Assembly: GCA_051530055.1 (NCBI GenBank)
Contig: CM121341.1
Location: 3,693,761 to 3,757,760, forward strand
Reading direction: 5' to 3'
DNA length: 64,000 bases
Source: Neoechinorhynchus agilis
Taxonomy: Eukaryota; Animalia; Acanthocephala
Part shown: positions 12,725-46,722 of the stretch, in pieces
Layout: every line of letters begins with the position of its first letter
How positions within the stretch are numbered: the stretch's first letter is position 1
The notes under the pieces: generated by a model
What the model was told of the DNA's origin: nothing
What the model saw: only the letters and a program-made list of their open reading frames with translations
Databases searched by the model: none
Translations under genes and position numbers: made by a program

Positions 12725-15700
12725 TGTTTTTCTTTCATATTGAGTTGATTGGTCTTGCGACATCTTCTTTTTGGCCTCTCGCCTATATTCCTTTTTGGGA
12801 GCCTTTCGGCTGACTTGCACACATCGGAGGCGCTCAGCTGCACTCCAAGGGACAGGGCCAACCCCCTTTGGGGCCGATGGGCGACCTCAAACGTGACCCC
12901 AATACTTTCAGCAGCCTCGAACACCCGCGGAACCCAGCGTCCGGTGGCGTTGAACCATCGACATATCGAGCGCATTATGAACCCGCAAGCGGCCACTTGG
13001 TCCTATGGGCGGTTTATTTATTTGATCACACACGAATACTGTTAGCTTATGAGTTGTTTTCTTCAGATTGAGTTGATTGGTCTTGCGACATCTTCTTTTG
13101 GGCCTCTCGGCTATATAAATTTTTGGGAGCCTTTCGGCTGACTTGCACACATCGGAGGCGCTTAGCTGCACTCGAAGGGACAGGGCCAACCCCGTTTGGG
13201 GCCGATGGGCGACCTCAAACGTGACCCCAATCCCTTCAGCAGCCTCGAACACCCGCGGAATTCCGCGACCGATGGCGTTGAACTATCGACATAACGAGCG
13301 CATTATGGACGCGCACGCCGCCACTTGGCCCTATGTGTGGTTTATTTATTTGATCACACACGAATACTGTTAGCGTATGAGTTGTTTTCTTCAGATTGAG
13401 TTGATTGGTCTTGCGACATCTTCTTTTCGGCCTCTCGGCTATATAAATTTTTGGGAGCCTTTTGACTGACTTGCAAACATCGGAGGCGCTTAGCTGCACT
13501 CGAAGGGAAAGGGCCAACCCCCTTTGGGGCCGATGAGCGATCTCAAACCTTAATCTCACCCTTTTCAGCAGCCTCGAACACCAGCGGAACCCAGCGACCG
13601 GTGGCGTTGAACCATCGACATATCGAGCGCATTATGAACGCGCAAGCGGCCACTTGGTCCTATGTGTGGTTTATTTATTTGATCACACACGAATACTGTT
13701 AGTTTATGAGTTGTTTTCTTCAGATTGAGTTGATTGGTCTTGCGACATCTTCTTTTTTGCCTCTCGCCTGTATTCATTTTTGGGAGCCTTTCGGCTGACT
13801 TGCACACATCGGAGGCGCTTAGCTGCACTCGAAGGGACAGGGCCAACCCCCTTTGGGGCCGATGGGCGACCTCAAACCTTATTCTCACCCTTTTCAGCAG
13901 CCTCGAACACCGGCGGAACCCAGCGACCGGTGGCGTTGAACCATCGAGATATCGAGCGCATTATGAACGCGCAAGCGGCCACTTGGTCCTATGTGCGGTT
14001 TATTTATTTGATCACACACGAATACTGTTAGTTTATGAGTTGTTTTCTTCAGATTGAGTTGATTGGTCTTGCGACATCTTCTTTTGGGCCTCTCGGCTAT
14101 ATTCATTTTTGGGAGCCTTTCGGCTGACTTGCACACATCGGAGGCGCTAAGCCGCACTCGAAGGGACAGGGCCAACCCCCTTTGGGGCCGATGGGTTACC
14201 TCAAACCTGACCCACACTTTTTTCAGCAGCCTCGAACACCCGCGGAACCAAGCGACCGGTGGCCATATCGAGCGCATTATGAACGCGCACGCCGCCACTT
14301 GGTCCTATGTGTGGTTTATTTATTTGATCACACACGAATACTGTTAACTTATGAGTTGTTTTCTTCAGATTGAGTTGATTAGTCTTGCGACATCTTCTTT
14401 TGAGCCTCTCGGCTATATTCATTTTTGGGAGCCTTTCGGCTGACTTGCACACATCGGAGGACCTCAGCCGCACACGAAAGGACAGGGCCAACCCCCTTTG
14501 GGGCCGATGGGTTACCTCAAACCTGACCCACACTTTTTTCAGCAGCCTCGAACACCCGCGGAACCAAGCGACCGGTGGCCATATCGAGCGCATTATGAAC
14601 GCGCACGCCGCCACTTGGTCCTATGTGTGGTTTATTTATTTGATCACACACGAATACTGTTAGCTTATTACTTTTCTTCATATTGAGTTGATTAGTCTTG
14701 CGACATCATCTTTTGGGCTTCTCGCCTATATTCCTTTTTGGGAGCCTTTCGGCTGACTGGCACACATCGGAGGCGCTCAGCCGCACTCGAAAGGACAGGG
14801 CCAACCCCCTTTGGGGCCGATGGGCGACCTCAAACGTGACCCCAATCCTTTCAGCAGCCTCGAACACCCGCGGAATTCAGCGACCGATGGCGTTGAACTA
14901 TCGACATAACGAGCGCATTATGAACGCGCAAGCGGCCACTTGGTCCTATGTGTGGTTTATTTATTTGACCACACAACAATACTGTTAGCTTATGAGTTGT
15001 TTTCTTCAGATTGAGTTGATTGGTCTTGCGACATCTTCTTTTGGGCCTCTCGGCTATATAAATTTTTGGGAGCCTTTCGGCTGACTTGCACACATCGGAG
15101 GCGCTTAGCTGCACTCCTAAGGACAGGGCCAACCCCCTTTGGGGCCGATGGGCGACCTCAAACCTGAATCTCATTCTTTTCAGCAGCCTCGAACACCGGC
15201 GGAACCCAGCGACCGGTGGCGTTGAACCATCGACATATCGAGCGCATTATGAACGCGCACGCCGCAACTTGGTCCTATGTGTGGTTTATTTATTTGATCA
15301 CACACGAATACTGTTAGTTTATGAGTTGTTTTCTTCAGATTGAGTTGATTGGTCTTGCGACATCTTCTTTTTTGCCTCTCGCCTATATTCATTTTTGGGA
15401 GCCTTTCGGCTGACTTGCACACATCGGAGGCGCTTAGCTGCACTCGAAAGGACAGGGCCAACCCCCTTTGGGGCCGATGGGCGACCTCAAACCTTAATCT
15501 CACCCTTTTCAGCAGCCTCGAACACCAGCGGAACCCAGCGACCGGTGGCGTTGAACCATCGACATATCGAGCGCATTATGAACGCGCACGCGGCCACTGG
15601 GTCCTATGTGTTGTTTATTTATTTGACCACACACGAATACTGTTAGCTTATGAGTTGTTTTCTTCAGATTGAGTTGATTGGTCTTGCGACATCTTCTTTT

Positions 15701-17182
15701 TTGCCTCTCGCCTATATTCCTTTTTGGGAGCCTTTCGGCTGACTTGCACACATCGGAGGCGCTTAGCTGCACTCGAAGGGACAGGGCCAACCCCCTTTGG
15801 GGCCGATGGGCGACCTCAAACCTGAATCTCACCCTTTTCAGCAGCCTCGAACACCGGCGGAACCCAGCGACCGGTGGCGTTGAACCATCGACATATCGAG
15901 CGCATTATGAACGCGCAAGCGGCCACTTGGTCCTATGTGTGGTTTATTTATTTGATCACACACGAATACTGTTAGCTTATGAGTTGTTTTCTTCAGATTG
16001 AGTTGATTGGTCTTGCGACATCTTCTTTTTTGCCTCTCGCCTATATTCATTTTTGGGAGCCTTTCGGCTGACTTGCACACATCGGAGGCGCTAAGCCGCA
16101 CTCGAAGGGACAGGGCCAACCCCCTTTGGGGCCGATGGGTTACCTCAAACCTGACCCACACTTTTTTCAGCAGCCTCGAACACCCGCGGAACCAAGCGAC
16201 CGGTGGCCATATCGAGCGCATTATGAACGCGCACGCCGCCACTTGGTCCTATGTGTGGTTTATTTATTTGATCACACACGAATACTGTTAGCTTATGAGT
16301 TGTTTTCTTCATATCGAGTTGATTAGTCTTGCGACATCATCTTTTGGGCTTCTCGCCTATATTCCTTTTTGGGAGCCTTTCGACTGACTTGCACACATCC
16401 GAGGCGCTTAGTTGCACTCGAAGGGAAAGGGCCAACCCCCTTTGGGGCCGATGAGCGACCTCAAACCTTAATCTCACCCTTTTCAGCAGCCTCGAACACC
16501 CGCGGAACCAAGCGAGCGGTGGCGTTGAACCATCGATATATCGAGCGCATTATGAACGCGCACGCGGCCACTGGGTCCTATGTGTTGTTTATTTATTTGA
16601 CCACACACGAATACTGTTAGCTTATGAGTTGTTTTCTTCAGATTGAGTTGATTGGTCTTGCGACATCTTCTTTTGGGCCTCTCGGCTATATTCATTTATG
16701 GGAGCCTTTCGGATGACTTGCACACATCGGAGGCGCTCAGCCGCACTCGAAAGGACAGGGCCAACCCCCTTTGGGGCCGATGGGCGACCTCAAACGTGAC
16801 CCCAATCCTTTCAGCAGCCTCGAACACCCGCGGAATTCAGCGACCGATGGCGTTGAACTATCGACATAACGAGCGCATTATGAACGCGCAAGCGGCCACT
16901 TGGTCCTATGTGTGGTTTATTTATTTGACCACACAACAATACTGTTAGCTTATGAGTTGTTTTCTTCAGATTGAGTTGATTGGTCTTGCGACATGTTCTT
17001 TTGGGCCTCTCGGCTATATTCATTTTTGGGAGCCTTTCATCTGACTATCACACATCGGAGGCGCTTAGCTGCACTCGAAGATACAAAGCCGACCCTCTTT
17101 GGGGCCGATGGGTTATCTAAAACGTGACCCCTACCCTTTCAGCAGCCTCGAACACCCGTGGAACCCAGCGACCGGTGGCGTT
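12725..17182 (-). repeat. Tandem array 2, 329-bp unit (316-bp variant), ~13.5 copies, each with a tRNA-headed SINE-like core on the minus strand
   Basis: GAGTTGATTGGTCTTGCGAC recurs every 329 bp (identical ORF starts at 15349, 15678, 16007). The 316-bp variants lack GTTGAACCATCGA. The rightmost copy is cut at ~17182 by a Penelope-like fragment. Confidence 0.96.
15351..15604 (-). ncRNA. Representative tRNA-derived SINE-like / putative Pol III element (75-nt tRNA-like head at 15604-15530 plus hairpin-rich body)
   Basis: Minus strand reads GGACCCAG-TGGCCGCGT-GCGCG[TTCATAA]TGCGC-TCGATATGTC-GATGG[TTCAACG]CCACC-GGTCG-CTGGGTTCC. This gives an acceptor-like stem, an anticodon-like arm (CAT) and a T-loop/B-box, but no D-arm. 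Downstream hairpins are AGCC-GAAA-GGCT and GCC-GAGA-GGC. Confidence 0.55.
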
Positions 17183-17189
17183 TATGCTT

Positions 17190-17789: not shown

Positions 17790-20700
17790 GCGTTTTTTCC
17801 AGTCCGCAAACGTAAATCCGAACAAATGAATCAATTTTCGAGTTTTTTTCTTTGTTCTCATTAGGCAGAATTTTAACACGGAAGAATGCATAAAATCAAT
17901 TTTTAATTACGGCGATCGAGTAGAAATATTAAAATTTCTAGCGATATGCGAATACGGCAAATGGACGCGTTTTTCCCAATTCGTTGACGTAAATCCGAAT
18001 GAATCAATTTTCGTGTATTTTCTTTGTTCTCCTGGACACGAATGACGTCACCTCAACTCCGACGCGAAAATACGGTTGACTTTGTTGAAGGCAGAATTTT
18101 AACACGGAAGAATGCATAAAATCAATTTTTAATGACGACGATCGAGTAGAAATATTAAAATTTCTAGCGAAATGCGAATACGGCACATGGACGCGTTTTT
18201 CCCAATTCGTTGACGTAAATCCGAATGAATCAATTTTGGTGTACTTTCTTTGCTCTCCTGGGCACGAATTACGTCACCTCAACTCCGACGCGAAAATTCG
18301 GTTGACTTTGTTGAAGGCAGAATTTTAACACGGAAGAATGCATAAAATCAATTTTTAATGACGACGATCGAGTAGAAATATTAAAATTTCTAGCGAAATG
18401 CGAATACGGCACGTGGACGCGATTTTTCCCATTCGTTGACGTAAATCCGAATGAATCAATTTTCGTGTACTTTCTTTGCTCTCCTGTGCACGAAAATACG
18501 GTTGACTTTGTTGAAGGCAGAATTTTAGCACGGAAGAATGCATAAAATCAATTTTTAATTACGACGATCGAGTAGAAATATTAAAATTTCTAGCGATATG
18601 CGAATACGGCACATGGACGCGATTTCCCAATTCGTTGCGTAAATCCGATGAATCAATTTTCGTGTACTTTCTTTGCTCTCCTGGGCACGAATTACGTCAC
18701 CTCAACTCCGACGCGAAAATTCGGTTGACTTTGTTGAAGGCAGAATTTTAACACGGAAGAATGCATAAAATCAATTTTTAATGACGACGATCGAGTAGAA
18801 ATATTAAAATTTCTAGCGAAATGCGAATACGGCACGTGGACGCGATTTTTCCCATTCGTTGACGTAAATCCGAATGAATCAATTTTCGTGTACTTTCTTT
18901 GCTCTCCTGTGCGAAAATACGGTTGACTTTGTTGAAGGCAGAATTTTAACACGGAAGAATGCATAAAATCAATTTTAATTACGACGATCGAGTAGAAATA
19001 TTAAAATTTCTAGCGATATGCGAATACGGCACATGGACGCGATTTTCCCAATTCGTTGGCGTAAATCCGAATGAATCAATTTTCGTGTACTTTCTTTGTT
19101 CTCCTTGGCCGAATACGTCACCTCAACTCCGACGCGAAAATACGGTTGACTTTGTTGAAGGCAGAATTTTAACACGGAAGAATGCATAAAATCAATTTTT
19201 AATTACGGCGATCGAGTAGAAATATTAAAATTTCTAGCGATATGCGAATACGGCACATGGACGCGTTTTTCCCAATTCGTTGGCGTAAATCCGAATGAAT
19301 CAATTTTCGTGTACTTTCTTTGCTCTCCTGGGCACGAATTACGTCACCTCAACTCCGACGCGAAAATACGGTTGACTTTGTTGAAGGCAGAATTTTAACA
19401 CGGAAGAATGCATAAAATCAATTTTTAATGACGACGATCGAGTAGAAATATTAAAATTTCTAGCGAAATGCGAATACGGCACATGGACGCGTTTTTCCCA
19501 ATTCGTTGACGTAAATCCGAATGAATCAATTTTCGTGTACTTTCTTTGCTCTCCTGGGCACGAATTACGTCACCTCAACTCCGACGCGAAAATTCGGTTG
19601 ACTTTGTTGAAGGCAGAATTTTAACACGGAAGAATGCATAAAATCAATTTTTAATGACGACGATCGAGTAGAAATATTAAAATTTCTAGCGAAATGCGAA
19701 TACGGCACATGGACGCGATTTTTCCCATTCGTTGACGTAAATCCGAATGAATCAATTTTCGTGTACTTTCTTTGCTCTCCTGTGCACGAAAATACGGTTG
19801 ACTTTGTTGAAGGCAGAATTTTAACACGGAAGAATGCATAAAATCAATTTTTAATTACGACGATCGAGTAGAAATATTAAAATTTCTAGCGATATGCGAA
19901 TACGGCATGGACGCGTTTCCCAATTCGTTGACGTAAATCCGAATGAATCAATTTTCGTGTACTTTCTTTGCTCTCCTGGGCACGAATTACCACCCACCCA
20001 CGAAAATCGGTTGACTTTGTTGAAGGCAGAATTTTAACACGGAAGAATGCATAAATCAATTTTTAATACAAACAAACTCCTCCTGCCGAAAATACGGTTG
20101 ACTTTGTTGAAGGCAGAATTTTAACACGGAAGAATGCATAAAATCAATTTTTAATTACGACGATCGAGTAGAAATATTAAAATTTCTAGCGAAATGCGAA
20201 TACGGCACATGGACGCGTTTTTCCCAATTCGTTGGCGTAAATCCGAATGAATCAATTTTCGTGTACTTTCTTTGCTCTCCTGGGCACGAATTACGTCACC
20301 TCAACTCCGACGCGAAAATTCGGTTGACTTTGTTGAAGGCAGAATTTTAACACGGAAGAATGCATAAAATCAATTTTTAATGACGACGATCGAGTAGAAA
20401 TATTAAAATTTCTAGCGAAATGCGAATACGGCACGTGGACGCGATTTTTCCCATTCGTTGACGTAAATCCGAATGAATCAATTTTCGTGTACTTTCTTTG
20501 CTCTCCTGTGCACGAAAATACGGTTGACTTTGTTGAAGGCAGAATTTTAACACGGAAGAATGCATAAAATCAATTTTTAATTACGACGATCGAGTAGAAA
20601 TATTAAAATTTCTAGCGATATGCGAATACGGCACATGGACGCGATTTTCCCAATTCGTTGACGTAAATCCGAATGAATCAATTTTCGTGTACTTTCTTTG

Positions 20701-22042
20701 CTCTCCTGGGCACGAATTACGTCACCTCAACTCCGACGCGAAAATTCGGTTGACTTTGTTGAAGGCAGAATTTTAACACGGAAGAATGCATAAAATCAAT
20801 TTTTAATGACGACGATCGAGTAGAAATATTAAAATTTCTAGCGAAATGCGAATACGGCACGTGGACGCGATTTTTCCCATTCGTTGACGTAAATCCGAAT
20901 GAATCAATTTTCGTGTACTTTCTTTGCTCTCCTGTGCACGAAAATACGGTTGACTTTGTTGAAGGCAGAATTTTAACACGGAAGAATGCATAAAATCAAT
21001 TTTTAATGACGACGATCGAGTAGAAATATTAAAATTTCTAGCGAAATGCGAATACGGCACATGGACGCGATTTTCCCAATTCGTTGGCGTAAATCCGAAT
21101 GAATCAATTTTCGTGTACTTTCTTTGCTCTCCTGTGCACGAATGACGTCACCTCAACTCCGACGCGAAAATACGGTTGACTTTGTTGAAGGCAGAATTTT
21201 AACACGGAAGAATGCATAAAATCAATTTTTAATTACGACGATCGAGTAGAAATATTAAAATTTCTAGCGATATGCGAATACGGCACATGGACGCGTTTTT
21301 CCCAATTCGTTGACGTAAATCCGAATGAATCAATTTTCGTGTACTTTCTTTGCTCTCCTGTGCACGAATTACGTCACCTCAACTCCGACGCGAAAATACG
21401 GTTGACTTTGTTGAAGGCAGAATTTTAACACGGAAGAATGCATAAAATCAATTTTTAATGACGACGATCGAGTAGAAATATTAAAATTTCTAGCGAAATG
21501 CGAATACGGCACATGGACGCGATTTTCCCAATTCGTTGGCGTAAATCCGAGTGAATCAATTTTCGTGTACTTTCTTTGCTCTCCTGTGCACGAATTACGT
21601 CACCTCAACTCCGACGCGAAAATACGGTTGACTTTGTTGAAGGCAGAATTTTAACACGGAAGAATGCATAAAATCAATTTTTAATGACGACGATCGAGTA
21701 GAAATATTAAAATTTCTAGCGAAATGCGAATACGGCACATGGACGCGATTTTCCCAATTCGTTGGCGTAAATCCGAGTGAATCAATTTTCGTGTACTTTC
21801 TTTGCTCTCCTGTGCACGAATTACGTCACCTCAACTCCGACGCGAAAATACGGTTGACTTTGTTGAAGGCAGAATTTTAACACGGAAGAATGCATAAAAT
21901 CAATTTTTAATGACGACGATCGAGTAGAAATATTAAATTTTCTAGCGAAATGCGAATACGGCACATGGACGCGATTTTACCAATTCGTTGGCGTAAATCC
22001 GAATGAATCAATTTTCGTGTATTTTCTTTGTTCTCCTTGGCC
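17790..22042. repeat. Tandem array 3, 226-bp and 200-bp units (~19-20 copies)
   Basis: GGCAGAATTTTAACACGG occurs at 18090, 18316 and 18516. The 200-bp unit lacks 26 bp between two CGAA words. The first copy (~17790-17863) is degenerate, and the last ends 20 nt before the RAD51 ATG. Confidence 0.97.
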
Positions 22043-22062
22043 AGGTTTATCGATATTTTTAG

Positions 22063-23157
22063 ATGGCGACAAAGCGTGCAGAACGTAAAGCGGCAGCTTT
22101 GGCACAACAAGAAGCAGCAACGCCTGTGCTTGAGACGAGTGCTCCATTGTCAGAGCAGCGACTTGATCAGGACATTTCGGTATGTGGTCCGATTCCAATT
22201 AGTCGTCTATCATCGATTCCACAATCGGGCATAAGCAGTGCAGACGTTCGTAAATTAGAGGATGCCGGATTCCATACGATAGAGTCTGTAGCGTTTACGC
22301 CTAAGAAATGTCTGATACAAATAAAAGGAATAAGCGAAGTGAAGGCAGACAAGATCTTGTCAGAAGCTCAAAAACTGATTCCGATGGGTTTTACTACAGC
22401 TAGCGAGATTCATAAAAAGCGTGCTGATATGATTCAGTTGACGACTGGTTGTAAGGATTTGGATAAACTTTTAGGCGGTGGGATAGAGACTGGATCTCTT
22501 ACTGAGATATTCGGAGAGTTTCGTACTGGGAAGACTCAATTGTGCCATATGTTGGCAGTGACTTGTCAATTACCGATCGATATGGGCGGTGGAGAAGGAA
22601 AGGCGATTTATATTGATACCGAGAACACGTTTCGTCCTGAGAGATTACTTGCTATTGCAGATAAGTTTAATCTATGTGGTCCGGATGTATTAGATAATGT
22701 GGCTGTTGCTAGAGCTTATAATACAGATCATCAACAACAACTCCTTCTTCAGGCTTCAGCGATGATGTGCGAATCGAGATACGCTTTATTAGTCGTCGAT
22801 AGCTCTACTGCTCTATATAGAACTGATTTCTCAGGTCGAGGAGAATTGAGTGCAAGGCAAATGCATTTGGCTCGGTTTCTTCGGGCTCTGATGAGACTTG
22901 CGGACGAATTCGGAGTTGCTGTCGTTATAACGAATCAAGTTGTTAGTCAAGTGGACGGTGCGGCCAGTATGTTCTGTGGAGATTCCAAGAAACCGATCGG
23001 TGGAAATATCATGGCTCATGCTTCAACTACGAGACTTTACTTGAGAAAAGGAAGAGGAGAAAATAGAATTTGTAAGATCTATGACAGTCCATGTTTGCCT
23101 GAAGCAGAAGCAATGTTTGCTATTGGTTCAGACGGAATACAAGACGTCAGCGATTGA
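22063..23157 (+). CDS. RAD51: DNA repair recombinase RAD51, intronless, 364 aa
   Basis: N-terminal HhH region ([20 protein letters not shown]), Walker A GEFRTGKT, Walker [30 protein letters not shown] and [16 protein letters not shown] are diagnostic of RAD51 rather than DMC1. C-terminal [15 protein letters not shown]. Confidence 0.98.
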
Positions 23158-23799
23158 AAATCGAACTTTTCACATCGAGAATGTTTTAGGTTATGTTTCT
23201 TTTATTCGAACGTTACGTTTTTCAATAATACACATTAAAATAACATTTTTGATCGCGTTTTAAAAAAATCCGTCATTAAAATGAAGATTGAATTCATTGA
23301 CGATAAAAAGTCAGGAAAGGGAAGAGAATCGCCGAATCAAAAACCTGCAAAGTTTATTACACGTTTATTTGTTAATTAACAGAGAAAAGGACTCATGTAA
23401 CTCCAATTCGCTGCAGGGGTCCTCATGAACACTCGCATTTGCAGGATATTGATTTCGGACTTGGTTGGTGAAATTGTTTTTAGTCTGTTAGTTTATTTTG
23501 ATTTATTTGATTTTGGTTGGTTAATTTGTAGTTGTTGTTTTCCGCTCTTTCCCCCAAATCAATTCGCATTTGAACGATTGAGCGGCTGAACAGAAAAAGC
23601 GAAGGTAGAGATTTTTGCGAGGAACTGGAGGATGGAAAATGTCGGGGCGACGCGAGTGTTGTAAGTGTGAGTAAAAGGAGAAATCAGAGGTTGAAATTGA
23701 ATCGGAAGAGAATGAAGGCACTTTGAGTGCTTTTAAAAGATTAGAAAAAGGTGTTTTTCTGGGAGCAGATTAGAACGCACCTCTTGTGAAATGTATTAA

Positions 23800-24200
23800 G
23801 TTTTTTGAATAGTTTACAAGAAAGATTGCAGAATGTTGGATATGCGCGTAGGCGAGCGTTGGTTGGATGGCGATGTTATAAAAGTACTTGAGGTCTTTGG
23901 ATGATAATCCAAGGAATCGGGACGTTTAAGAAGATAGAATTTAATAGACCCTTCGAGCAACAAGTTGATGTGTGTTTGTCCTACTTTAGATTTTCCTGAA
24001 AATGAAGACCAAGGATACGAACAGGGGAGCCATGGTTGGTAGGAAAAGGAAAAAGTGCTTGATCGAAAGGGTGATTTGAGCTCGAGGGTAAGATTTCGAA
24101 GCATTTGGTTAAGGGTAAGACATTTAGAGGAGCAAAATGCTTGAACGTGAAAAATCTCGTTAGAAGTAAGTGCATGCGTAATGATTGTGAGATCTTCAGC
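23800..24200 (-). mobile_element. Degenerate Penelope-like RT N-terminal remnant (tentative)
   Basis: KFYLL...RSPTRISNILQSF resembles the PLE RT motif FY.LPKIHK...RPIVS...SPT..IS..L. It lies just downstream (minus strand) of hammerhead-bearing inverted repeats. Confidence 0.35.
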
Positions 24201-24488: not shown

Positions 24489-24594
24489 ACAATAATGATC
24501 AATTTCTTTACAATGTATTTGATTCTCGCGTCTAAATTTTTTTTTCATTTTTAAAAACTTCATGAATCAATCTTCATCTCTCGACAATTAACAC

Positions 24595-31234: not shown

Positions 31235-32303
31235 GACAGATTGCACAGCGGGCATCCTGGACGGGAGGCGATGATAGCACTTGGACGATATTATGCATAT
31301 TGGCCGAAAATGGAGGATGCTATCAAAAGCAAGATAGGAACTTGTTCGATGTGTCAAGCGAATCGACCGAATAAGGTCGAAACGCTACTATTAAGTCGGG
31401 ATTGGCCAACGAATCCATGGAAGCGTGTACACGTGGACCTCGCTGGCCCCGTCAACGGTATAGTATGCCTTGTACTAATAGACGCTTGCACCAAATGGCC
31501 GGAGGTATCGAATGTCTACGGAGTTGTTTTAGCAGATTCGGAGTGCCTCGGTCCATAGTGTCGAACAATGGACCCCAATTCAGAAGATTTCAGAAAGTTT
31601 TGTCAAGAGCGTCAGATAAGACACATTCGTGCGAGCCCCTACCATCCTAGAACTTACGACCTTGTCGAGCGACATTGAAACGACGGACGCGCAAATTGGG
31701 GGAAGGAATGTCGAAGGAGAGTATAGATGCTTTCCTGATGGCTTACCGGAATACGCCTCATGCTACAACCGGAATAGCAAATGCCACAATGATGCTTGGT
31801 CGAAGATTGAACACTATCTTCGATAACATCAAGCCCAACACCGAATGCGAGTGATCGGAAGAGATCAGAAAAGAAGATGAGCACGTTCGACGACCAACCG
31901 ATTCAGTTCAAAGAGGATAAAGCAAGCCCGTGAGGGTCGGGAAAATTAGTCGCGATAAACGTGGGACGATAATGGCCGGGAGCGACGGTGCAATACGGAT
32001 TTCATAAGAGAAAAATAATCCAGTTCGGCAGAGGAGAACGAAAAAGTGACACACAAAGACCTGGATTCGAATCAGAAGTCACACTACCAGACAGCCCAAT
32101 GGAACACATCGAAGATGAATCGGTCCCACCACGACGAAGTACACGGACCAGGCGTCGACCTGTTCTACCATACGATTCGTACTTGAGAAAGGGAGAAATG
32201 TGATGGTAGTAATCGATCGGTGACGTGCGTGTGAGTGTCCATTGGTGTGCGTGATACGCGTAGCCGAGTTGGTTTTTGGTTTTCGGCAATAAAAACATTA
32301 TCA
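31235..32303 (+). mobile_element. Ty3/gypsy LTR retrotransposon 3' part: integrase, PPT and short 3' LTR (32199-32303)
   Basis: Integrase motifs LHSGHPG..YWP..C..C (HHCC), PWKRVHVDLAGP, IDACTKWPEV and RFGVPRSIVSNNGPQF. Polypurine tract GAAAGGGAGAAA is followed by a TG...CA segment containing AATAAA. Confidence 0.88.
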
Positions 32304-32639
32304 GTTAATGGAGACTCCGATATCATCCGAGACCCCGGTAGCAGTGGCAAAAACTGAAAAGGAGATCGAGTCTCACTTCTCTGATCCAGGGCACGAAACA
32401 CTGTCGGTGTTGCACTACTCACGCAATAGCTGTCGTTTTTGTGGCGAGAAGATTCACCCGCAATGCAGACCATTAATCGGAAAACGACGTTTCCAATGAT
32501 TTCAAAATATTTCTTTTTACATTGATTATTAGAATCAACTCAATATAAAGAAAATAACTCATAAACTAACAGTATGCCTGTATTAATAATAATAATAAAA
32601 TATTACTCACGTGCATTGCGACGCTTCCGTTCGTATTCG

Positions 32640-35600
32640 GTACGATGGTAAATCGAATCAACCATCAGCCTCATATATTTCGCGTAATTTTTTTGTCAAA
32701 AAGTTGTGCTCCGAACAATGATCAAAATGATCAAGATTCGATTGATCCATGGGCTCCGGATGACTATGGAGGGGGAAAGATGGATGTGGATTATAAGGTT
32801 AGCGATGGGGAAGGTAATTTGGAGGTTATGTTGAAGGATAGCGTCATGAAGGAGGTTGTTTTGGAGAGTAGTGGGCTGTCGGCCCCCATCACGGTGAATG
32901 TTCTGATTCAGTGTTTAGAGGTGTTTTTCGGTTGCCGAGAAGGAGAGATGATTTTGTGTTAAAAATTAATAAAGAGGATTTAGGAGATTTAAGGGCAAGT
33001 GATTTAACGAAGATATATTTTTCGGAAGGTTTAAAACCTAATAACTTTAGTGGTGACAGAAGATATCCGATTAAAAAATGTTTTAGGTCCAAGTGGGCGG
33101 TGCTAATGATTTTCTTGGAAGTTGAAGGAATGAAACTATTTGAGGAGCTTCTTCGTAGTAAAAATATTAGGTATAAAAATATATCAAGGAAAGTGTCAGT
33201 TTTGGTGCTAAACCCTCTGCCAAACATGTCGAAAGATGAGTTTACATTATTCCAAAACACTTTTGGTATTGTGCCAATTAAATATTTGAAAAGGAGTCCT
33301 TCTTCGGAGCCTTATGCTTTACTTGTATCGGGCTCGCAGGATGAGGTAGACAAGGTCCAGGAAAGATATTTTGGGTCTATGGCATATTGGATTAATTTCG
33401 TATCCCGCCAGTCGGAGTCGATTTATGATAACGTTTTAACTCAATGCACAAATTGCTGCAGATGGGGGCATACAAGTTTCCAATGTGCCAGTCAGGCTAA
33501 ATGTATGAGATGTGGTGGCCCTCACAACACAATTAATTGCAGTACTTTGGGTTCAGTTAAATGTGCAAGTTGTTTAGGAAATCATGAGGCATATAGGCGT
33601 ACATGTACGGCAACGGTTAGTTACTGGAAAATGGCGAAGCCAGGTGATTATAATAGTTGGTTTAAACGGAAGGTGGAAAAGGTGGATGGTAGTAATATGG
33701 GGGAAAATGGTCCTCAAGGAGAGGATAAGGTTAGGAGAAATAGTTTTCAGGTAGAAGATGAGGTTAAGGAGGAGTTAGAAATACTTAAAGAGATGGTGGA
33801 TAATTTAAATAAAAAACTCGAGGAGAAGGATAAAATAATTTGTGATTTATTAAATATGGTTGCTTTGGTCAAGAAGACGGAAAATAGTAAGGAGGTGGAT
33901 GAGAGAAATTGATGATGGGTAAGAGGTGTGCATCAGGTGAAAAAGAGGATGAACCTGATAATAAGGAGGATGGGTTGTCATCGCATGGCCCGATTAGAAA
34001 GATGGGCAGGCATATTAATGGTCCGCATAAAGGCCGTTTTCGCTAAATATTTTAAAATGTTTAATGTTAATTTACTTACTTTTATGACGAATAATTTTAT
34101 ATTAATTTCTTATAATGTATCTATAGCCTTGGTTTTGTCAGAGAATATTTGTTTAGCGGGTCGACTAGATGATGCGGACGTTATTTACTTTCAAGAAACG
34201 GGAAATATGAATCTTGTTAATAGAGGTGGTATGATATCATTTACATTAATGCCCAGTGGAGGTGGAGTAATCCATAATAATATTGGTTTCTCAGTTGGAC
34301 TACAGTCTTATGTTCATAAGAGATTTAGTCCCGAGCTATTATTTCAGGTAAAGCACGTGTATTTTGCGGTCCAATTAATAGAGATTGAGGGGATGGGTGA
34401 TTCATATCGTTTGAGTGGTAGATGGATTATGGCTAATTTGTATATTGCGCCAAGAAGACTTACATGGTTTAAGAATACCAGAGAAGAGTGGTTCAAGACA
34501 TGGGATTCCGACATTATTGTTGGTGACTTAAACTCCAACGGGTTGAGTGCCTTCTCACATTGGGAAGAAGAGTACATTTTTCACCTCACTCCTTTCCCAT
34601 CATTTCATAATTTTACAAAATCTGTACATTCTTTTTTGGACGTTTTTATATGTAAACAAAGAGTTAAATATTCATGTGAGAGTGTTAGGGCAGTTTCTTG
34701 AACAACTTAGGATAGGATACGATTTGATTATATTTCAGTTGGGAATTATGGATCTTAAATCAAGAGTCGTTTGGAATGTTTCGATCAGGTTAGTTAATTT
34801 TAACAATTGCTAGCGGGCTGATATTTGCAAATTTTCGACTGTAAAATTGGAAAATTTAAATAAGATGATATCTGTAGCATGTTCAAGAAATTTAGTGATT
34901 TTTTCACATATAAGGCGGCATAGACCGTCGAAAACGGCGCGGTCATTTTATCGTAGTGCAAGAATTTGAAGGTTTGCGGGGCCGGTGGATGATTCGATTT
35001 TACAAAGAAATATTTATTGAAAGTACTAGGAGAAGTAGACTAAGAATAAGTGAGACTAGAGACTTTTCTAAGAATTTCTGGAGTGTTATTCTGAATAGAA
35101 AGCGAACGGACTAAAAGCCTCAGATTGGATTGGGTCAGTCTCGTATCCAATAGTTGTGGAGCAAATTCTATTGAATCATATATTTGATATATCCTTAAAA
35201 CCTACTTTTATTCCTTCGGATAATTTCTCTCCCAGATGGAATTGTGAAATTAAGAAGTTTTTAGTTTTTTGGAAGGCGTCTTCGAAAGCATCAAACGAGT
35301 TGTCGGTATCACCGAAGATTTTCGATTTAGTTTGTCAAGATGTAAAGATTGAGATATTGAAGCGTATTTCAAATCGTGTAACTTTTGAGGACTTATGCAA
35401 GATTAATATAGTGAGGAAGGCCATCATACCTAAAGTTAAAGGAAAGATTAAATCTCCGAGTGACATTAGGTTTATATCGATTCAAAACCACATCATTTTT
35501 CTTATGGAGAAAGTAATAAACGATGAATTAATGGGGATTCTCAGTAGAAGGGATCTTATTCCGAAATGTTTTCATGGTTTTGTACCGGGAAAGGGAGTGG

Positions 35601-36260
35601 GAACACTAATTAATGAGTTATGTATTTTACAGAAATCGGTGGCTAAGGTTAATAAGGTTTTATTACAGGTTGATGTTAATAAGGCGTTCGACACTATTAG
35701 CAGGAATTTTATATATAAGACTTTTTTAGGCTTGAAGCTCCCCAAGAAGCTTCTTGGTCGTATTCAGTTTTTAATGGAATCAAAGGCATATTTTTTAGAG
35801 GTTGATCCGTTGAAAAGTCTTTTTTATTCTAAGTTAGGGGTTCCGCAGGGTTCACCGTCGTCCCCGACATTATTTTTAATTGGCATGATTGGTATTATTA
35901 GGAAATTGAAGAAGTTATCCAAAGTAAGCATTTTATTCTACGCCGATGATATTTTATTTTTTATTTTTCATAAGAAGAAGGAAGTTTTATGCTGCATAGT
36001 GGATTCGGTACTATATAAACTTGACAAGTGCTTAGAGGATGCGAATTTAAGCACCAATAGAAGGAAAACAACGCTTGTCCCTTTGACTGATTCCAATGTG
36101 GCTCATAAGCAGTTATATGCTAATTTTTTAGAGGATCCGCGCACTCAAATGATGAAGGTTTCAAGATGTTCTAGAGTGCTTGGGATAAACTTTCCTTCTA
36201 CTAGAAGAAGAGTTGTCTTGAACTCGGAGAAAGACAACCGGATGAGCCACTCATAAAGAT
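32640..36260 (+). mobile_element. Near-full-length divergent LINE (I/Jockey/Tad1/R1-type architecture): ORF1 32911-33912, APE ~34080-34701, RT 35156-36256; ORF2 disrupted
   Basis: ORF1 has three knuckles: CX2CX4HX4C, CX2CX3HX4C and CX2CX3HX6C. APE motifs are DVIYFQET, ANLY, VGDLNS and SFLDV. RT motifs are IRFISI, GFVPG, DVNKAFD, GVPQGSPSSPTLF and YADD. Confidence 0.9.
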
Positions 36261-38817: not shown

Positions 38818-39044
38818 TTTTGAAAAAACTAGATATCGGGTCCAACATTAGCAAAACTATTTCAAAATATCGATCCGTCATTTAACCAAATAAATAAACA
38901 ATTTACCCCTTTTTTGTCCAATAAACCGATGTGTCGTTTTTAGGCGACTTTACGAATTTATCAGGGGACCATTCAATCTACGGAAAATGAATGCATTAAT
39001 CAATATATGCAAAAAAATATTTTACCAATTAACAGTAGCGCCCT

Positions 39045-40885
39045 CTTGCAGGAAAAATTCTCCGCAAATGTATTACAGAGAAAACCGGACAGCAACATCG
39101 TCCAGTCCAACTGCACATCCTGCGGGGCGGAAGCTATTGTCCACTCGCTCCGAAACTTTGCTACGAGAAGCTCAGAGCCCTGCGTGATTCTTAAGTGTGA
39201 TTTTCGGAACGCTATTAACTCTCTCGATAGAGAAATCATGTTTTGCGCAGTTATGGATCACGCACCAGAAGCCTTCCAGTATTTTCTCAATGCCTACGGG
39301 ACGGCGACTCCTTTGCTTTTCGAAGACAACCTCATTTGGCCCGAAAGAGGAGTGCAGCAAGGAGATCCCCTCGGTCCAATCGAATTCTCTCTAACAGTAA
39401 ATCCAATAGCGCACTCTCTCCATTCCAGCTTCAATGCTTGGTACTTGGATGACGCTACGCTCGGAGGTGACCCCACCGTTGTACTGCGCGATTTGGAGAC
39501 GCTGATTAGGGAGACCTCGAAGATGGGCATTGAGCTCAATGCTGGAAAATGTGAGCTCCTTGTACTGAATATTGGAGACGCCGCGAAAGTCAAAGAACTA
39601 ATGGCTGGGTTCGAGGCCGCAGCTCCAAGTCTGAAACTCGTGACTCGGGAACAACTCAGCCTCCTGGGCAGTTGCGTCTTCGATTCAAATGTGGAAGATG
39701 AGATCGGCCGTATCGTACCGAAACTTTCGTTGCTGTGCGATAGGGTGAGCGCTCTCTCAGCTCATGAAGCCTTGTTTCTCATAAAGAAAGCACTCTTTAC
39801 CCTAAAAGCCTTATATAAGGTCCGCACAGCAACATTCTTCAAACATAAGGAAGGATTGGCTAAGCTGGACGATAAGGTGAGGGCATGCCTCGAGCGTATT
39901 TTAAATGTCCAGCTCTCAGATGAGGCGTGGCGACAAGCTTCTTTGCCTGTGTCATCTGGGGGATTGGGCATTCGGGCGCTAGTAAACCTTGCCTTGCCAG
40001 CCTTTCTTGGATTGTATGAGAAGAGTCAACCGATAGCAGAGACCAAGACTGCGATGGCGGTTGAGGAATGGTACCAGCAGACAGGCGCTAACCATGTTCC
40101 CGTGAATGGCCCCAGACAGTCGATCTGGGACGGACCTCTCGTCGTGAGAGCTCACAGCTCTCTACTTTCCAATTCTCGCGATGGGGTCGTCCGAGCTAGA
40201 CTGTTGGCAGTTTCAACACGGGAATCTGGGCCGTGGTTGGAGGCTGTTCCTCTGGCATCAGTGGGAACTCTTCTCACTGATGAAGTAACGAGGATCGCAG
40301 TGTCTTTAAGACTTGATCTCCCGATATGCACGCCCCATCGCTGTCGATGTGGGTCTTTGGTTGATGCTTTCGGGCGACACTCTCGTTTGCCGAAAGTCAG
40401 AAGGAAGGTTCTCACGTCATTCTGAGATCAATCGCGTAATCTCTCGGGCGTTGAGAACGGCGAACTTCCCCAACGTCTTGAAACCCGCCCATCATTGTCG
40501 ACTATACGGTCTTCGACCTGACGGAATTTCGGTCTTTCGGTGGCGGGAGGGCAAATGCCTTCCCTGGAACGCCACGCGTGTGGACACCCTCGCAGTAAGC
40601 AACATTCCCTACCACTCTCTCGAAATCGCTGGAGGTGCCGCCAATGCTAGCGAGGACCCACTATTTTGTCCCCTTTGGGGTAGAGACGTATGGAGCGCTC
40701 GGCAGCTCGGCACTCTCTCTGCTCCAGGATGTCTCGAAGAAATTGATAGAAGCAACCGGAGACTCAAGAGCAGGTGTATTCCTTCGACAAAATATCGCGC
40801 TAACAGTACAACGGGGCAATGCTGCCAGCGTGATGGCGACGGTCGAGGAAGGACAAAAGCTGGAATTCGGCGGGAAGTGGTGATT
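39045..40885 (+). mobile_element. CRE-like non-LTR retrotransposon, 5'-truncated, RT + CCHC + restriction-like endonuclease, frameshifted
   Basis: Contains QQGDPLGP, WYLDD, LPVSSGGLGIR, CRCG..D.FGRH, LRPDG..W..G..LPWNAT..DT and IALTVQRGNA. Highly similar to the inverted copy at 24595-26100. Confidence 0.93.
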
Positions 40886-41269
40886 GCACGTTTTGTGCTC
40901 TATTATGTTATGAAAAACAAAAAAGTTAAAAGAAAGAAAAAATATATTTTCATTCTCGATTTTCTAAAAACACATAAACACCTACAAAAAATAATAGAAA
41001 ACCGGGATCGCGATATCCGGATAAGAAAGGGCCATAACGACGTTATTTCCTTTAAGCATAAAATTTAACAAATCCAACCAACGGTCCAAAGTTGCCGTAA
41101 AGTTGGCCGAGGAGAGAAAGCAACCCGAAGAATATCTGATTGATTTTAGAGATGAAAGCACCCTAAATAACCATTGTTTATATTTCCATAAGTTCCTTAA
41201 TTTGATTAATTATGTGTTTTTTTGAAGACGTAGAACGTTTATTTGCTAGTTCTGCTACAATCACCACCG

Positions 41270-44310: not shown

Positions 44311-44504
44311 AATCTGACTAAGTGAGGATTATTTGTTCAGTTTATTTTAGAAGAACCGTTTTTGACATTTTTTTGTATTTGCACAATTGGAAAATTGGTG
44401 GTTGGGTACTCAGTAAACTTAAAAAGTGCAAAAAAAGCTTACAATAAAGGGTAATGTTACTTGAACGCGATGAAGAATACATATATTAATAATATTTCTT
44501 TGAT

Positions 44505-46722
44505 TTCCAATTACATGTAATAATCGACTTTTGACCTTGATTAAAATAAATAGAACTCAAAATACGTTTAAAATCCATACTTTTTAAATGGTTTTGAATA
44601 CACAACTTTAAATCGGGGCCCAGTGGTGTGTGCGTTCAAAATGAGCTCGATTGGTCGCTGGTTCAAGTCCACTGAATTCCACGGGGGTTGCGGGGGGTCA
44701 GGTTTGAGGTCGCCCATCGGCCCCAAAAGTGGGTTGGCCCTGTCCCTTCGAGGGCTGAGCGCCTCCGAAGTGTGTGAGTTGGCAAAGAGGCTCAAAAGAA
44801 GATGTCGCAAGACCCTGAGTGTATGCGATTTCAGATAAACATTAAATTTATAATAAATTTCCAATTACATGTAATAATCGACTTTTGACCTTGATTAAAA
44901 TAAATGGAACTCAAAATACGTTTAAAATCCATACTTTTTAAATGGTTTTGAATACACAACTTTAAATCGGGGCCCAGTGGTGTGTGCGTTCAAAATGAGC
45001 TCGATTGGTCGCTGGTTCAAGTCCACTGAATTCCACGGGGGTTGCGGGGGGTCAGGTTTGAGGTCGCCCATCGGCCCCAAAAGTGGGTTGGCCCTGTCCC
45101 TTCGAGGGCGGCTGAGCGCCTCCGAAGTGTGTGAGTTGGCAAAGAGGCTCAAAAGAAGATGTCGTAAGACCCTGAGTGTATGCGATTTCAGATAAACATT
45201 AAATTTATAATAAATTTCCAATTACATGTAATAATCGACTTTTGACCTTGATTAAAATAAATGGAACTCAAAATACGTTTAAAATCCATACTTTTTAAAT
45301 GGTTTTGAATACACAACTTTAAATCGGGGCCCAGTGGTGTGTGCGTTCAAAATGAGCTCGATTGGTCGCTGGTTCAAGTCCACTGAATTCCACGGGGGTT
45401 GCGGGGGGTCAGGTTTGAGATCGCCCATCGGCCCCAAAAGTGGGTTGGCCCTGTCCCTTCGAGGGCGGCTGAGCGCCTCCGAAGTGTGGAGTTGGCAAAG
45501 AGGCTCAAAAGAAGATGTCGTAAGACCCTGAGTGTATGCGATTTAAGATAAACATTAAATTTATAATAAATTTCCAATTACATGTAATAATCGACTTTTG
45601 ACCTTGATTAAAATAAATGGAACTCAAAATACGTTTAAAATCCATACTTTTTAAATGGTTTTGAATACACAACTTTAAATCGGGGCCCAGTGGTGTGTGC
45701 GTTCAAAATGAGCTCGATTGGTCGCTGGTTCAAGTCCACTGAATTCCACGGGGGTTGCGGGGGGTCAGGTTTGAGATCGCCCATCGGCCCAAAAGTGGGT
45801 TGGCCCTGTCCCTTCGAGGGCGGCTGAGCGCCTCCGAAGTGTGTGAGTTGGCAAAGAGGCTCAAAAGAAGATGTCTGACCCTGAGTGTATGCGATTTAAG
45901 ATAAACATTAAATTTATAATAAATTTCCAATTACATGTAATAATCGACTTTTGACCTTGATTAAAATAAATGGAACTCAAAATACGTTTAAAATCCATAC
46001 TTTTTAAATGGTTTTGAATACACAACTTTAAATCGGGGCCCAGTGGTGTGTGCGTTCAAAATGAGCTCGATTGGTCGCTGGTTCAAGTCCACTGAATTCC
46101 ACGGGGGTTGCGGGGGGTCAGGTTTGAGGTCGCCCATCGGCCCCAAAAGTGGGTTGGCCCTGTCCCTTCGAGGGCGGCTGAGCGCCTCCGAAGTGTGTGA
46201 GTTGGCAAAGAGGCTCAAAAGAAGATGTCGCAAGACCCTGAGTGTATGCGATTTAAGATAAACATTAAATTTATAATAAATTTCCAATTACATGTAATAA
46301 TCGACTTTTGACCTTGATTAAAATAAATGGAACTCAAAATACGTTTAAAATCCATACTTTTTAAATGGTTTTGAATACACAACTTTAAATCGGGGCCCAG
46401 TGGTGTGTGCGTTCAAAATGAGCTCGATTGGTCGCTGGTTCAAGTCCACTGAATTCCACGGGGGTTGCGGGGGGTCAGGTTTGAGATCGCCCAAAAGTGG
46501 GTTGGCCCTGTCCCTTCGAGGGCGGCTGAGCGCCTCCGAAGTGTGTGAGTTGGCAAAGAGGCTCAAAAGAAGATGTCGCAAGACCCTGAGTGTATGCGAT
46601 TTAAGATAAACATTAAATTTATAATAAATTTCCAATTACATGTAATAATCGACATTTGACCTTGATTAAAATAAATAGAACTCAAAATACGTTTAAAATC
46701 CATGCTTTTTAAATGGTTTTGA
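44505..46722 (+). repeat. Tandem array 4, ~357-bp unit, ~6 copies; ~200-nt core homologous (inverted) to the array 2 core
   Basis: Repeated ORF starts at 45988 and 46345. Core 44615-44814 has a canonical B-box GGTTCAAGTCC (44660-44670) and shares TCAGGTTTGAGGTCGCCCATCGGCCCCAAA...GGTTGGCCCTGTCCCTTCGAG...AAAAGAAGATGTCGCAAGACC with array 2. Confidence 0.96.

Follow-up and report, generated by a model that had tools for sequence, protein, structure and literature searches.

Two tandem arrays of Neoechinorhynchus agilis share a short SINE-like core with Pol III promoter-like boxes

Introduction

tRNA-derived SINEs are laid out as a head, a body, a LINE-derived region, and a simple-repeat tail, are transcribed by Pol III, and occur as dispersed copies with target-site duplications. 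Reptiles, amphibians, and bivalves have already provided examples of satellites derived from SINEs and of tRNA-related Pol III tandem repeats. In bivalves, tandem arrays of 4 to 15 SINE units have the structure TSD1-(SINE-TSD1)n or TSD1-(SINE)n-TSD1, for which unequal recombination between target-site duplications has been suggested as one possible origin, and the SINEs concerned have conserved central domains and identified LINE partners (PMC11481361). The Pol III tandem families of amphibians comprise newt PolIII/TAN (~360 nt), Rana/polIII (~250 nt), Hy/polIII (~200 nt), and Xenopus OAX/satellite I, which have not been shown to have a dispersed SINE counterpart (PMC10702118). In squamates, SINE-derived satellites (sSats) have been described (Vassetzky et al. 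2023, PMC10702118). The squamate parent elements, Squam1 to Squam3, are known and abundant, and a satellite monomer there usually corresponds to part of a SINE.

The fish parasite Neoechinorhynchus agilis belongs to the Acanthocephala, or thorny-headed worms. Here we analyze a stretch of its genome in which, according to an original prediction, a tRNA-headed element had been amplified independently into two tandem arrays, referred to below as arrays 2 and 4.

Materials and methods

The window analyzed is the 64-kb stretch of contig CM121341.1 (N. agilis assembly GCA_051530055.1) from position 3,693,761 to position 3,757,760 of the forward strand; all positions below are those of the window. 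Arrays were delimited by TRF and copies of the core by BLASTN, MAFFT, and nhmmer. The genome sample searched for the core amounted to ~85 kb, consisting of the window and 21 kb from the same 19.4-Mb chromosome, the latter reached via look-ups with RAD51, a LINE protein (P0210), and one annotated ORF. The reference tRNAs used for the head alignments (yeast tRNA-Phe and tRNA-Lys3) were entered by hand.

About 45% of the window consists of tandem arrays, which fall into eight unrelated monomer families.

Results

Two arrays built on one core

Arrays 2 and 4 (Table 1) have in common a core that is 254 nt long in array 2 and 200 nt long in array 4, with 13 full copies and one 5'-truncated copy in the former and six copies in the latter. 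The GC content of the cores is 57 to 59% versus 24 to 29% for the spacers, and the spacers of the two arrays are unrelated, their local alignment being no better than that of shuffles (p ~ 0.98). The predicted GC-rich core of 200 to 254 nt between unrelated AT-rich spacers was thus borne out by TRF, BLASTN, MAFFT, nhmmer, and the spacer shuffles. In both arrays, SINE-like units run head to tail (13.7 × 329 bp and 6.3 × 357 bp), and the difference in unit length, together with the unrelated non-core DNA, supports the view that one discrete element was amplified separately into the two arrays.

Between the core consensuses of the two arrays, identity is 81.7% in the 202 columns that align, and a further 53 columns are gaps. 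By segment, it is 71% in the head, 87% in the body, and 100% in the last 21 nt. At its sharp 3' edge, the core stops at an exact nucleotide, with unrelated DNA directly after the 21 identical positions. As the divergence between the cores of the two arrays (K2P, 0.21) contrasts with within-array identities of 92% (array 2) and 98% (array 4), the cores must have diverged well before each array was homogenized.

Read in the sense direction, the representative array 2 core begins with a head of ~75 nt (positions 15933 to 15859), continues through a linker into the conserved body, and closes with the conserved 21-nt end AAAAGAAGATGTCGCAAGACC. Satellite-like traits of array 2 are its diverged or truncated end monomers and an identity matrix that peaks at lag 6, reflecting a higher-order duplication of ~6 monomers (~1.96 kb). 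The DNA upstream of the truncated first monomer is unrelated; at its other end, the array stops after AAATAAACCG, ~200 bp from the 3' end of a POLA2-like gene (annotated end, ~12520). Array 4 begins 110 nt ahead of a core and stops 17 nt short of the next expected core start.

Table 1. Positions of the two arrays and their component parts in the window
Feature	Position	Strand	Description
Array 2	12728-17182	minus	TRF: period 329 bp, 13.7 copies, 91% matches
Array 2 monomers		minus	316-329 bp; core 254 nt + tail module 66 nt + linker 9 nt
Array 2, first monomer (sense)	16982-17185	minus	5'-truncated inside B box; nhmmer profile positions 62-273
Array 2, representative core	15680-15933	minus	254 nt, 57% GC
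Array 2, A-box-like motif	15923-15933	minus	GGACCAAGTGG; 7/9 specified positions of TRGCNNAGTGG
Array 2, B box	15876-15886	minus	GGTTCAACGCC; fits GGTTCRANNCC; starts 47 nt after A-box-like start
Array 2, tail module	15614-15679	minus	AATCAACTCAATCTGAAGAAAACAACTCATAAACTAACAGTAT... to A/T-rich simple repeat AAATAAATAAA; starts at exact 3' core boundary
Array 2, linker from tail to next core	15605-15613	minus	9 nt, CCACACATA; from alignments
Array 2, terminal diverged tail	12683-12750	minus	CAATAT kept, as in solo copy
Solo tail-module copy	32533-32600	plus	90-93% identity to array 2; followed by (TAA)n-like run
Array 4	44503-46724	plus	TRF: period 357 bp, 6.3 copies, 98% matches
Array 4 monomers	44503-46724	plus	200-nt core + 154-155 nt of AT-rich spacer; no relation to the array 2 spacer
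Array 4, representative core	44969-45171	plus	59% GC
Array 4, A-box-like motif	44970-44980	plus	GGGCCCAGTGG; 8/9 specified positions of TRGCNNAGTGG
Array 4, B box	45014-45024	plus	GGTTCAAGTCC, consensus; starts 44 nt after A-box-like start

A tail module in array 2

Most of the 75-nt "spacer" of array 2 (66 nt) is a separate repeat module, a solo copy of which lies elsewhere in the window. The two match with a local alignment score of 83, versus 24 ± 4 for shuffles (BLAST E = 1.6e-12), and the homology of the solo copy begins at the same nucleotide as the core/tail boundary of array 2; nhmmer found no core upstream of the solo copy. As the tail module also occurs solo, the array 2 monomer looks like a nearly complete SINE with head, body, and tail rather than like an element plus local flank, and the (TAA)n ending of the solo copy matches the SINE order of head, body, tail, and simple repeat (PMC10702118). 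Seeding of satellites together with local flanks, as had been proposed, therefore does not simply describe array 2, 66 of whose 75 spacer nucleotides belong to this module. The non-core remainder of the array 4 unit is unrelated AT-rich DNA. In array 4, no tail module is recognizable, and the core itself, which ends in ...GCAAGACC, has no simple-repeat tail. The 9-nt linker between an array 2 tail and the next core could be the remnant of a flank or target site or a diverged 5' terminus of the element.

Promoter-like boxes and tRNA likeness of the head

At the 5' end of the shared unit, the start of the B box follows that of the A-box-like motif by 44 to 47 nt, a tRNA-like spacing. The B-box pattern GGTTCRANNCC, which has 15 matches in the window versus 0.67 expected, is exact in 7 of 13 array 2 copies and in all six array 4 copies (13/19 overall), and the combination AGTGG-N25-45-B box has 12 matches, all within arrays 2 and 4, versus 0.02 expected per window. 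These pattern counts and the tRNA-like spacing support the presence of Pol III type 2 promoter-like A and B boxes at the 5' end of the element, as predicted. Within array 2, the promoter-like head is decaying: the B box is deleted or mutated in 6 of the 13 full copies, and the head is the most variable part of the array (nucleotide diversity π, 0.139 in the head, 0.059 in the body, and 0.048 in the tail).

The claim of a tRNA-sized head held in part, as the head has these boxes and a likeness to tRNA 3' halves but is not a recognizable tRNA for ARAGORN or Rfam. In the T-arm/variable-loop region, the array 4 head aligned to yeast tRNA-Phe with a score of 33 (shuffles, 15 ± 2.8; p ~ 0.001), and its alignment to tRNA-Lys3 had a p of ~0.005 against shuffles. 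ARAGORN called no tRNA at its default and 90% thresholds; its calls at 80% and 70% had inconsistent anticodons and were no commoner than in dinucleotide shuffles, of which 4 to 8% and 20 to 36%, respectively, match. Rfam returned no tRNA, SRP, 5S, vault, hammerhead, or other family, either at E ≤ 10 on the heads alone (88 to 91 nt) and on 801-nt stretches or in a gathering-threshold scan of the whole window. The idea of a hammerhead or retrozyme was rejected on the basis of these scans.

The anticodon-like loop was found as described (TTCATAA in 12 of 13 array 2 copies and TTCAAAA in 6 of 6 array 4 copies), and a D arm is indeed absent. Other details of the proposed tRNA fold did not hold up. 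The tRNA-like 5' start GACCCAGTGGCC is present in only 2 of 13 array 2 copies, most of which have GACCAAGTGGCC or GACCAAGTGGCG instead, and the two sides of the acceptor pairing, GACCCAG and CTGGGTT, occur together in a single copy (at 15604) among the 19. As CTGAATT is common to array 4 and two variant copies of array 2, it is probably the older state, which weakens the proposed pairing. With array 4 as the outgroup, the older form of the T-stem is the imperfect GATGG/CCACC, and the perfect GATGG/CCATC ancestor is not implied. Given the ARAGORN, Rfam, acceptor-pairing, and D-arm results, we rejected a tRNA gene or tRNA-gene array.

A structured Pol III ncRNA gene family found no support either. 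The covariation that was to support the stems among diverged copies did not appear: the RNAalifold covariation term was -0.28 kcal/mol, and the one seemingly compensatory pair out of 41 lies in a misaligned column. No excess folding stability was found in the array 2 core at 15680 to 15933 (MFE z-score, -0.30) or in the array 4 sister copy at 44615 to 44814 (+1.06), and no TTTT terminator occurs in the 19 cores or in the representative array 2 spacer. Coding potential was dismissed, as the ORFs merely mirror a repeat whose 329-bp period is not divisible by 3; a translated core ORF had no match in the protein collection, not even to itself.

Search for copies elsewhere and for partner LINEs

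The prediction had made dispersed core copies a point of decision, and nhmmer found no solitary copy in the ~85 kb of N. agilis. Further, no core was found in the 23-kb RAD51 locus of Pomphorhynchus laevis, and exact scans with two conserved core blocks in metagenome contigs and with one block in prokaryotic-genome and viral contigs gave 0 matches, these collections being ill-suited to an acanthocephalan. Target-site duplications were not identifiable. The window contains remnants of LINE reverse transcriptase and endonuclease, indicating that retroposition machinery existed in the N. agilis genome. Among these remnants, there was no partner LINE sharing its 3' end with the core or tail, and, the solo tail copy excepted, the core and both spacers showed no similarity to LINE 3' ends, LTR sequences, or other repeats in the window.

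Discussion

On balance, we think that the two arrays are probably SINE-derived satellites, each from a different subfamily of one short SINE-like N. agilis retroposon. In such an element, the 5' region would have been tRNA-related but degenerate and would have carried the Pol III-type A-box-like motif and B box, from which the source element may have been transcribed, ahead of a GC-rich, conserved body closing with the invariant 21-nt stretch; the array 2 subfamily would additionally have had the 66-nt tail module leading into an A/T-rich simple repeat. Following presumed retroposition, one copy per locus may have been duplicated, with unequal crossing-over or replication slippage then expanding the array; the region is generally prone to tandem amplification, with ~45% of the window in arrays. 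The array 2 unit would then represent nearly all of the element with no more than 9 nt added, and the array 4 unit would represent the core plus ~155 nt of unrelated AT-rich DNA. In length, the core (200 to 254 nt, or ~320 nt with the array 2 tail) is within the SINE range of ~80 to 600 bp, and the boxes fall within the ~30 to 60 nt that separate the A and B boxes near the 5' end of SINEs. Counting against a SINE origin of these satellites are the reported scarcity of SINEs in the Rotifera-Acanthocephala clade (PMC7310846), the lack of a solitary core in the ~85 kb, the failure of the tRNA detectors on the head, the lack of a matching partner LINE among the remnants in the window, and the absence of a recognizable tail module from array 4.

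Alternatively, the core may belong to a tandem family of tRNA-related Pol III repeats without a past as a dispersed SINE, the arrays being local variants of an old satellite whose AT-rich parts were replaced by rearrangement. Every core copy seen is tandem, with none solitary in ~85 kb, the region forms arrays readily, and in monomer size (329 and 357 bp) and tRNA-like A and B boxes the arrays agree with the amphibian families, for which there is no known matching SINE (PMC10702118). We nevertheless consider this unlikely, because only the core is common to the two arrays, with 21 identical nucleotides and then unrelated DNA at a nucleotide-exact 3' boundary, and because the rest of the array 2 monomer is a separate module that is also present elsewhere; the exact boundary and the separate tail argue that a discrete unit moved and was assembled in modular fashion, not that a single monomer drifted. 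It is distinctly unlikely, in our judgment, that the core is a piece of another kind of repeat (a LINE UTR, a MITE or Helitron end, or an unclassified repeat) that was captured twice, with boxes that arose by chance or are tRNA debris lacking promoter meaning. An imperfect A box, better conservation of the body than of the head between the arrays (87% versus 71%), and the lack of a tRNA fold, covariation, or excess stability would fit such a fragment, but not boxes that sit tRNA-spaced exactly at the 5' end of the unit, where 0.02 are expected per window, nor the extended likeness to the tRNA 3' half, nor a core unlike any LINE or LTR remnant in the window.

Intact B boxes in 7/13 and 6/6 copies, and the intergenic position of the arrays next to housekeeping genes, could also point to clustered Pol III ncRNA genes or to TFIIIC-binding B-box boundaries beside the POLA2-like and RAD51 genes. 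A function of this kind is very improbable: variability in array 2 peaks in the head (π, 0.139), with the B box lost or mutated in 6/13 copies, there are no compensatory changes, folding is no better than that of shuffles, and neither a TTTT terminator (sense strand of the array 2 cores and representative spacer) nor an Rfam match was found. Further, six other unrelated arrays in the region imply that arrays here need no special function. The suggested TFIIIC-boundary role gained no support, with the head and B box being the least conserved part of array 2. We give hardly any credence to the bolder version in which the core would be the first characterized (recently) active Pol III SINE or ncRNA family of Acanthocephala and the arrays would be TFIIIC-bound boundaries between dense housekeeping genes (POLA2-like and RAD51) and satellite/LINE DNA. 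Most likely, the arrays are neutral, and nothing suggests a function.

In view of the published precedents (PMC10702118, PMC11481361), calling the family undescribed was too strong as far as its kind is concerned. Like the squamate sSats, the N. agilis arrays consist of tandem, tRNA-related SINE-like monomers in the 150- to 360-bp range and are distinct arrays of independent origin with only moderate homogenization. Unlike the squamate parent SINEs, the N. agilis core was seen only in arrays in the ~85 kb searched, and the array 2 monomer is close to the whole element rather than to a portion of it. Array 2 resembles the bivalve arrays in its direct head-to-tail arrangement of nearly complete units a few nucleotides apart (core, tail, and 9 nt, ~14 times), whereas array 4 differs from them by ~155 nt of non-element DNA per unit. 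The amphibian families, likened here by description, are tandem repeats of ~200 to 360 nt (OAX is longer) with a tRNA-like segment and, mostly, Pol III boxes; they do not share the two different non-core contexts of the N. agilis element, and in vitro Pol III transcription has been reported for newt PolIII/TAN, whereas the N. agilis element is known from its sequence. With tRNA-derived SINEs, the element shares its size, 5' A and B boxes, conserved body, tail module ending in an A/T-rich simple repeat, and subfamilies differing by indels and internal duplications, although its head, unlike that of a typical member, is too degenerate for tRNA detectors.

Conclusions

The core and the tail module belong in the repeat library used for masking and annotating the N. 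agilis genome. If dispersed copies exist, the element would give thorny-headed worms a first described SINE family. The arrays would then also add an invertebrate example to the conversion of SINEs into satellites, which is so far known mainly from squamates, with tandem arrays also in bivalves, and would provide a simple case of it, a single element having been taken up into arrays on two occasions within 30 kb. If the copies are tandem only, the element would instead join the small and poorly understood group of amphibian-type tRNA-like Pol III tandem repeats.

Two arrays built on one core

Array 2 contains 13 full minus-strand copies of a 254-nt GC-rich core plus one 5'-truncated copy, and array 4 contains six plus-strand copies of a 200-nt version of it (BLASTN, MAFFT, and nhmmer profile); neither BLASTN nor the nhmmer profile matched the core elsewhere in the window. 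Aligned over 202 columns, the consensus of one core matches that of the other at 81.7% of positions (K2P, 0.21); by segment, identity is 71% in the head (the ~75-nt 5' part), 87% in the GC-rich body that follows, and 100% in the last 21 nt (AAAAGAAGATGTCGCAAGACC). The 53 gap columns are grouped in a few indels. Array-2 cores carry a 27-nt insertion (columns 208 to 234 of the alignment of cores from both arrays) that is absent from array 4 and whose sequence suggests that the neighboring GCCGAAAGGCTCCCAAAAA segment was duplicated in tandem, together with further extra segments of 2, 7, and 16 nt. GC content is 57 to 59% in the cores and 24 to 29% in the spacers, and the spacers of the two arrays are unrelated to each other. 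As identity within arrays (92% in array 2 and 98% in array 4) greatly exceeds that between them, each array expanded long after the core lineages split, and the difference in repeat unit is most simply read as the result of separate amplification. The original prediction of a shared GC-rich core, unrelated AT-rich spacers, and independent amplification into two arrays is thus supported.

Coordinates of tandem arrays and neighboring features in the window
Feature	Position	Strand	Description	Method
Array	214-9698		periods 109/150/259/409 bp	TRF
Array 2	12728-17182	-	13.7 x 329 bp, 91% matches	TRF
Array 3	17863-22041		periods 200/226/426 bp	TRF
RAD51	22063-23157	+	single intronless ORF, 364 aa
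LINE copy	24594-25630	-	member of inverted pair
Integrase remnant	31241-32203	+	LTR-type retroelement, frameshifted, zinc-binding H2C2 domain
Solo copy of array-2 tail module	32533-32600	+		self-comparison of window
LINE	32.9-36.3 kb		ORF1 and ORF2
LINE copy	39039-40886	+	member of inverted pair
Array 4	44503-46724	+	6.3 x 357 bp, 98% matches	TRF
Array	49319-50440		periods 196/391 bp	TRF
Array	52188-54313		period 436 bp	TRF
Array	56345-61365		period 182 bp	TRF
Array	61341-61685		period 119 bp	TRF

Pol III boxes and tRNA likeness of the head

The shared unit opens with an A-box-like motif (GGGCCCAGTGG or GGACCAAGTGG), and 44 to 47 nt past the start of that motif begins a B box that fits the consensus (GGTTCAAGTCC in array 4 and GGTTCAACGCC in array 2). 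In the window, the B-box pattern has 15 matches versus 0.67 expected and the combined A-box-core and B-box pattern has 12 versus 0.02, these 12 all within the arrays; the copies are nonindependent, so these counts stand for one or two events, and the test was made post hoc. The part of the head that spans the variable loop and T arm outscores shuffles in alignments to tRNA 3' halves (array-4 head versus yeast tRNA-Phe, score of 33 against 15 +/- 2.8 for shuffles; array-4 head versus tRNA-Lys3, p~0.005; array-2 variant head versus initiator tRNA-Met, p~0.005), which serves as a lead only. ARAGORN reported no tRNA, and Rfam reported none at E<=10, even when the 88- to 91-nt heads were searched alone. 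Relaxed-threshold ARAGORN calls were rejected, as their anticodons were inconsistent and their rate was not above that of dinucleotide shuffles. The tRNA-sized head that had been proposed therefore holds in part: it has an A-box-like motif, a B box, and a T-arm region resembling tRNA 3' halves, but is not a tRNA detectable by ARAGORN or Rfam.

The finer tRNA features fared less well. The tRNA-like start GACCCAGTGGCC is present in just 2 of the 13 array-2 copies, and its proposed acceptor pairing with CTGGGTT(C) is complete in one copy; CTGAATT, which array 4 has in common with two variant copies of array 2 and which is therefore probably the older state, disrupts two of the proposed pairs. Rooting on array 4 gives GATGG/CCACC as the older T stem rather than the perfect GATGG/CCATC that had been taken as ancestral. 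RNAalifold found essentially no covariation among diverged copies (term, -0.28 kcal/mol), and the 1 of 41 pairs that looks compensatory sits in a misaligned column. Neither core showed folding stability in excess of that of shuffles (z = +1.06 and -0.30).

Layout of the repeat units

Of the 75 nt of the array-2 spacer, 66 align to a solo copy elsewhere in the window (score of 83 versus 24 +/- 4 for shuffles). Identity between this 66-nt tail module, which lies 3' of the core, and the solo copy is 90 to 93% across the first 43 to 49 nt, and an A/T-rich simple repeat ends both (AAATAAATAAA in array 2 and a (TAA)n-like run in the solo copy). The homology begins at the exact nucleotide where the likeness between array-2 and array-4 cores stops. 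The original prediction had regarded this spacer as local flank; the module shows that it is not simply that. The array-2 monomer thus consists of the 254-nt core, the 66-nt tail module, and 9 nt. Almost without flank, it follows the layout described for SINEs (PMC10702118), running from the head and body to a 3' region and a terminal simple repeat. The array-4 unit includes ~155 nt of AT-rich DNA with T-runs, of which no relative was found in the window, and array 4 both starts and ends inside this spacer.

No core was found upstream of the solo copy, whose neighbors are the LTR-element integrase remnant upstream and a LINE downstream. Its (TAA)n-like run lies just upstream of the LINE with ORF1 and ORF2. 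The solo copy may be what is left of a LINE end or a SINE after truncation, or a short separate element.

A repeat-rich setting

The RAD51 ORF maps to chromosome CM121341.1 of assembly GCA_051530055.1, which places the window at about 3,693,761-3,757,760; the chromosome is 19.4 Mb long and also encodes a LINE-related protein. With the six other arrays, whose monomers are unrelated, TRF delimits eight tandem-array families that make up ~45% of the window; arrays 2 and 4 are the only pair found to have sequence in common. A POLA2-like annotated gene ends at ~12520, ~200 bp from array 2. The closest named relative of RAD51 is that of the acanthocephalan Pomphorhynchus laevis (81% identity). RAD51 follows the 4-kb satellite array 3, and as its start codon is 22 bp past the array end (22037-22041), its promoter and 5' UTR must sit in or at the edge of that array. 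The P. laevis ortholog has introns, since its 350 aa are spread over 2754 bp. RAD51 in the window may be a retrogene; no poly(A) remnant is visible 3' of it.

The stretch from 24 to 41 kb is filled by LINE reverse-transcriptase and endonuclease remnants plus the integrase remnant, near which no LTR pair was detected. Two inverted copies of one LINE family, 93 to 96% identical and ~13 kb apart, flank further LINE and LTR remnants. Plus-strand GC skew is strongly positive (0.23 to 0.27) at 22001-24000 and 32001-36000, coinciding with RAD51 and the plus-strand LINE.

Origin and constraint of the arrays

We lean toward the reading that the arrays are neutral, SINE-derived satellites. One degenerate tRNA-related retroposon would have had two subfamilies, each the source of one array; unequal exchange would have enlarged the arrays in a region where many sequences are amplified, and the products would be neutral. 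Within array 2, identity by monomer lag peaks at 92.7% at six, versus 88.5 to 89.5% at lags of 2 to 4, which points to a ~1.96-kb multimonomer duplication, and the last monomer has a diverged tail that retains states of the solo copy. The array-2 monomer series resembles the bivalve (SINE-TSD)n arrays (PMC11481361). The main rival, to which we give a distinctly smaller chance, is a tRNA-related Pol III tandem family that never had a dispersed parent, of the kind represented by amphibian PolIII/TAN, Rana/polIII, and OAX (PMC10702118). Dispersed copies are what would chiefly mark a SINE. The sample searched for them, made up of the 64-kb window, a 21-kb stretch of the same chromosome (at 1.12 Mb), and 23 kb from P. 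laevis, contained no solitary core, which is consistent with a tandem family of this kind; the SINE layout of the array-2 monomer speaks for a retroposon. A protein search with the translated core gave no match, and exact core patterns gave 0 matches in metagenome, prokaryotic-genome, and viral collections, all of these collections being ill suited to an acanthocephalan.

Two further readings rank as less likely. The shared unit may be a fragment of some other repeat in which the boxes are incidental; the negative ARAGORN and Rfam searches would fit this, and the spacing of the boxes and the resemblance to tRNA 3' halves make us consider it unlikely. A functional Pol III or TFIIIC role, which the boxes themselves would suggest, appears highly improbable. 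The truncation of the first array-2 monomer falls within the B box; nucleotide diversity in array 2 drops from its highest values, 0.145 in the linker and 0.139 in the head, to 0.059 in the body and 0.048 in the tail, its lowest; the B box is lost by a 13-nt deletion in three copies and reads AGTTCAACGCC in three others; and, read in sense orientation, none of the 13 array-2 cores contains TTTT, nor does the representative spacer. Together, these observations argue against selection for a Pol III promoter, structured RNA, or TFIIIC site within the arrays. The suggestion that arrays of B boxes act as TFIIIC boundaries sits poorly with a head that is among the most diverse parts and a B box altered in six array-2 copies.

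The element had also been proposed to be an undescribed SINE or Pol III ncRNA family; its kind is not new, since SINEs amplified in tandem are already on record, as are tandem repeats that resemble tRNAs (PMC10702118, PMC11481361). We found no acanthocephalan SINE or SINE-derived satellite in the literature searched, and the genome paper on N. agilis makes no mention of SINEs or satellites. The interest of these arrays is local and lies in their clade, Rotifera-Acanthocephala, in which SINEs are reported to be rare: RepeatMasker put their share of the genome at 0.38% in P. laevis, and in two rotifers it was 0.00 to 0.08% (PMC7310846).
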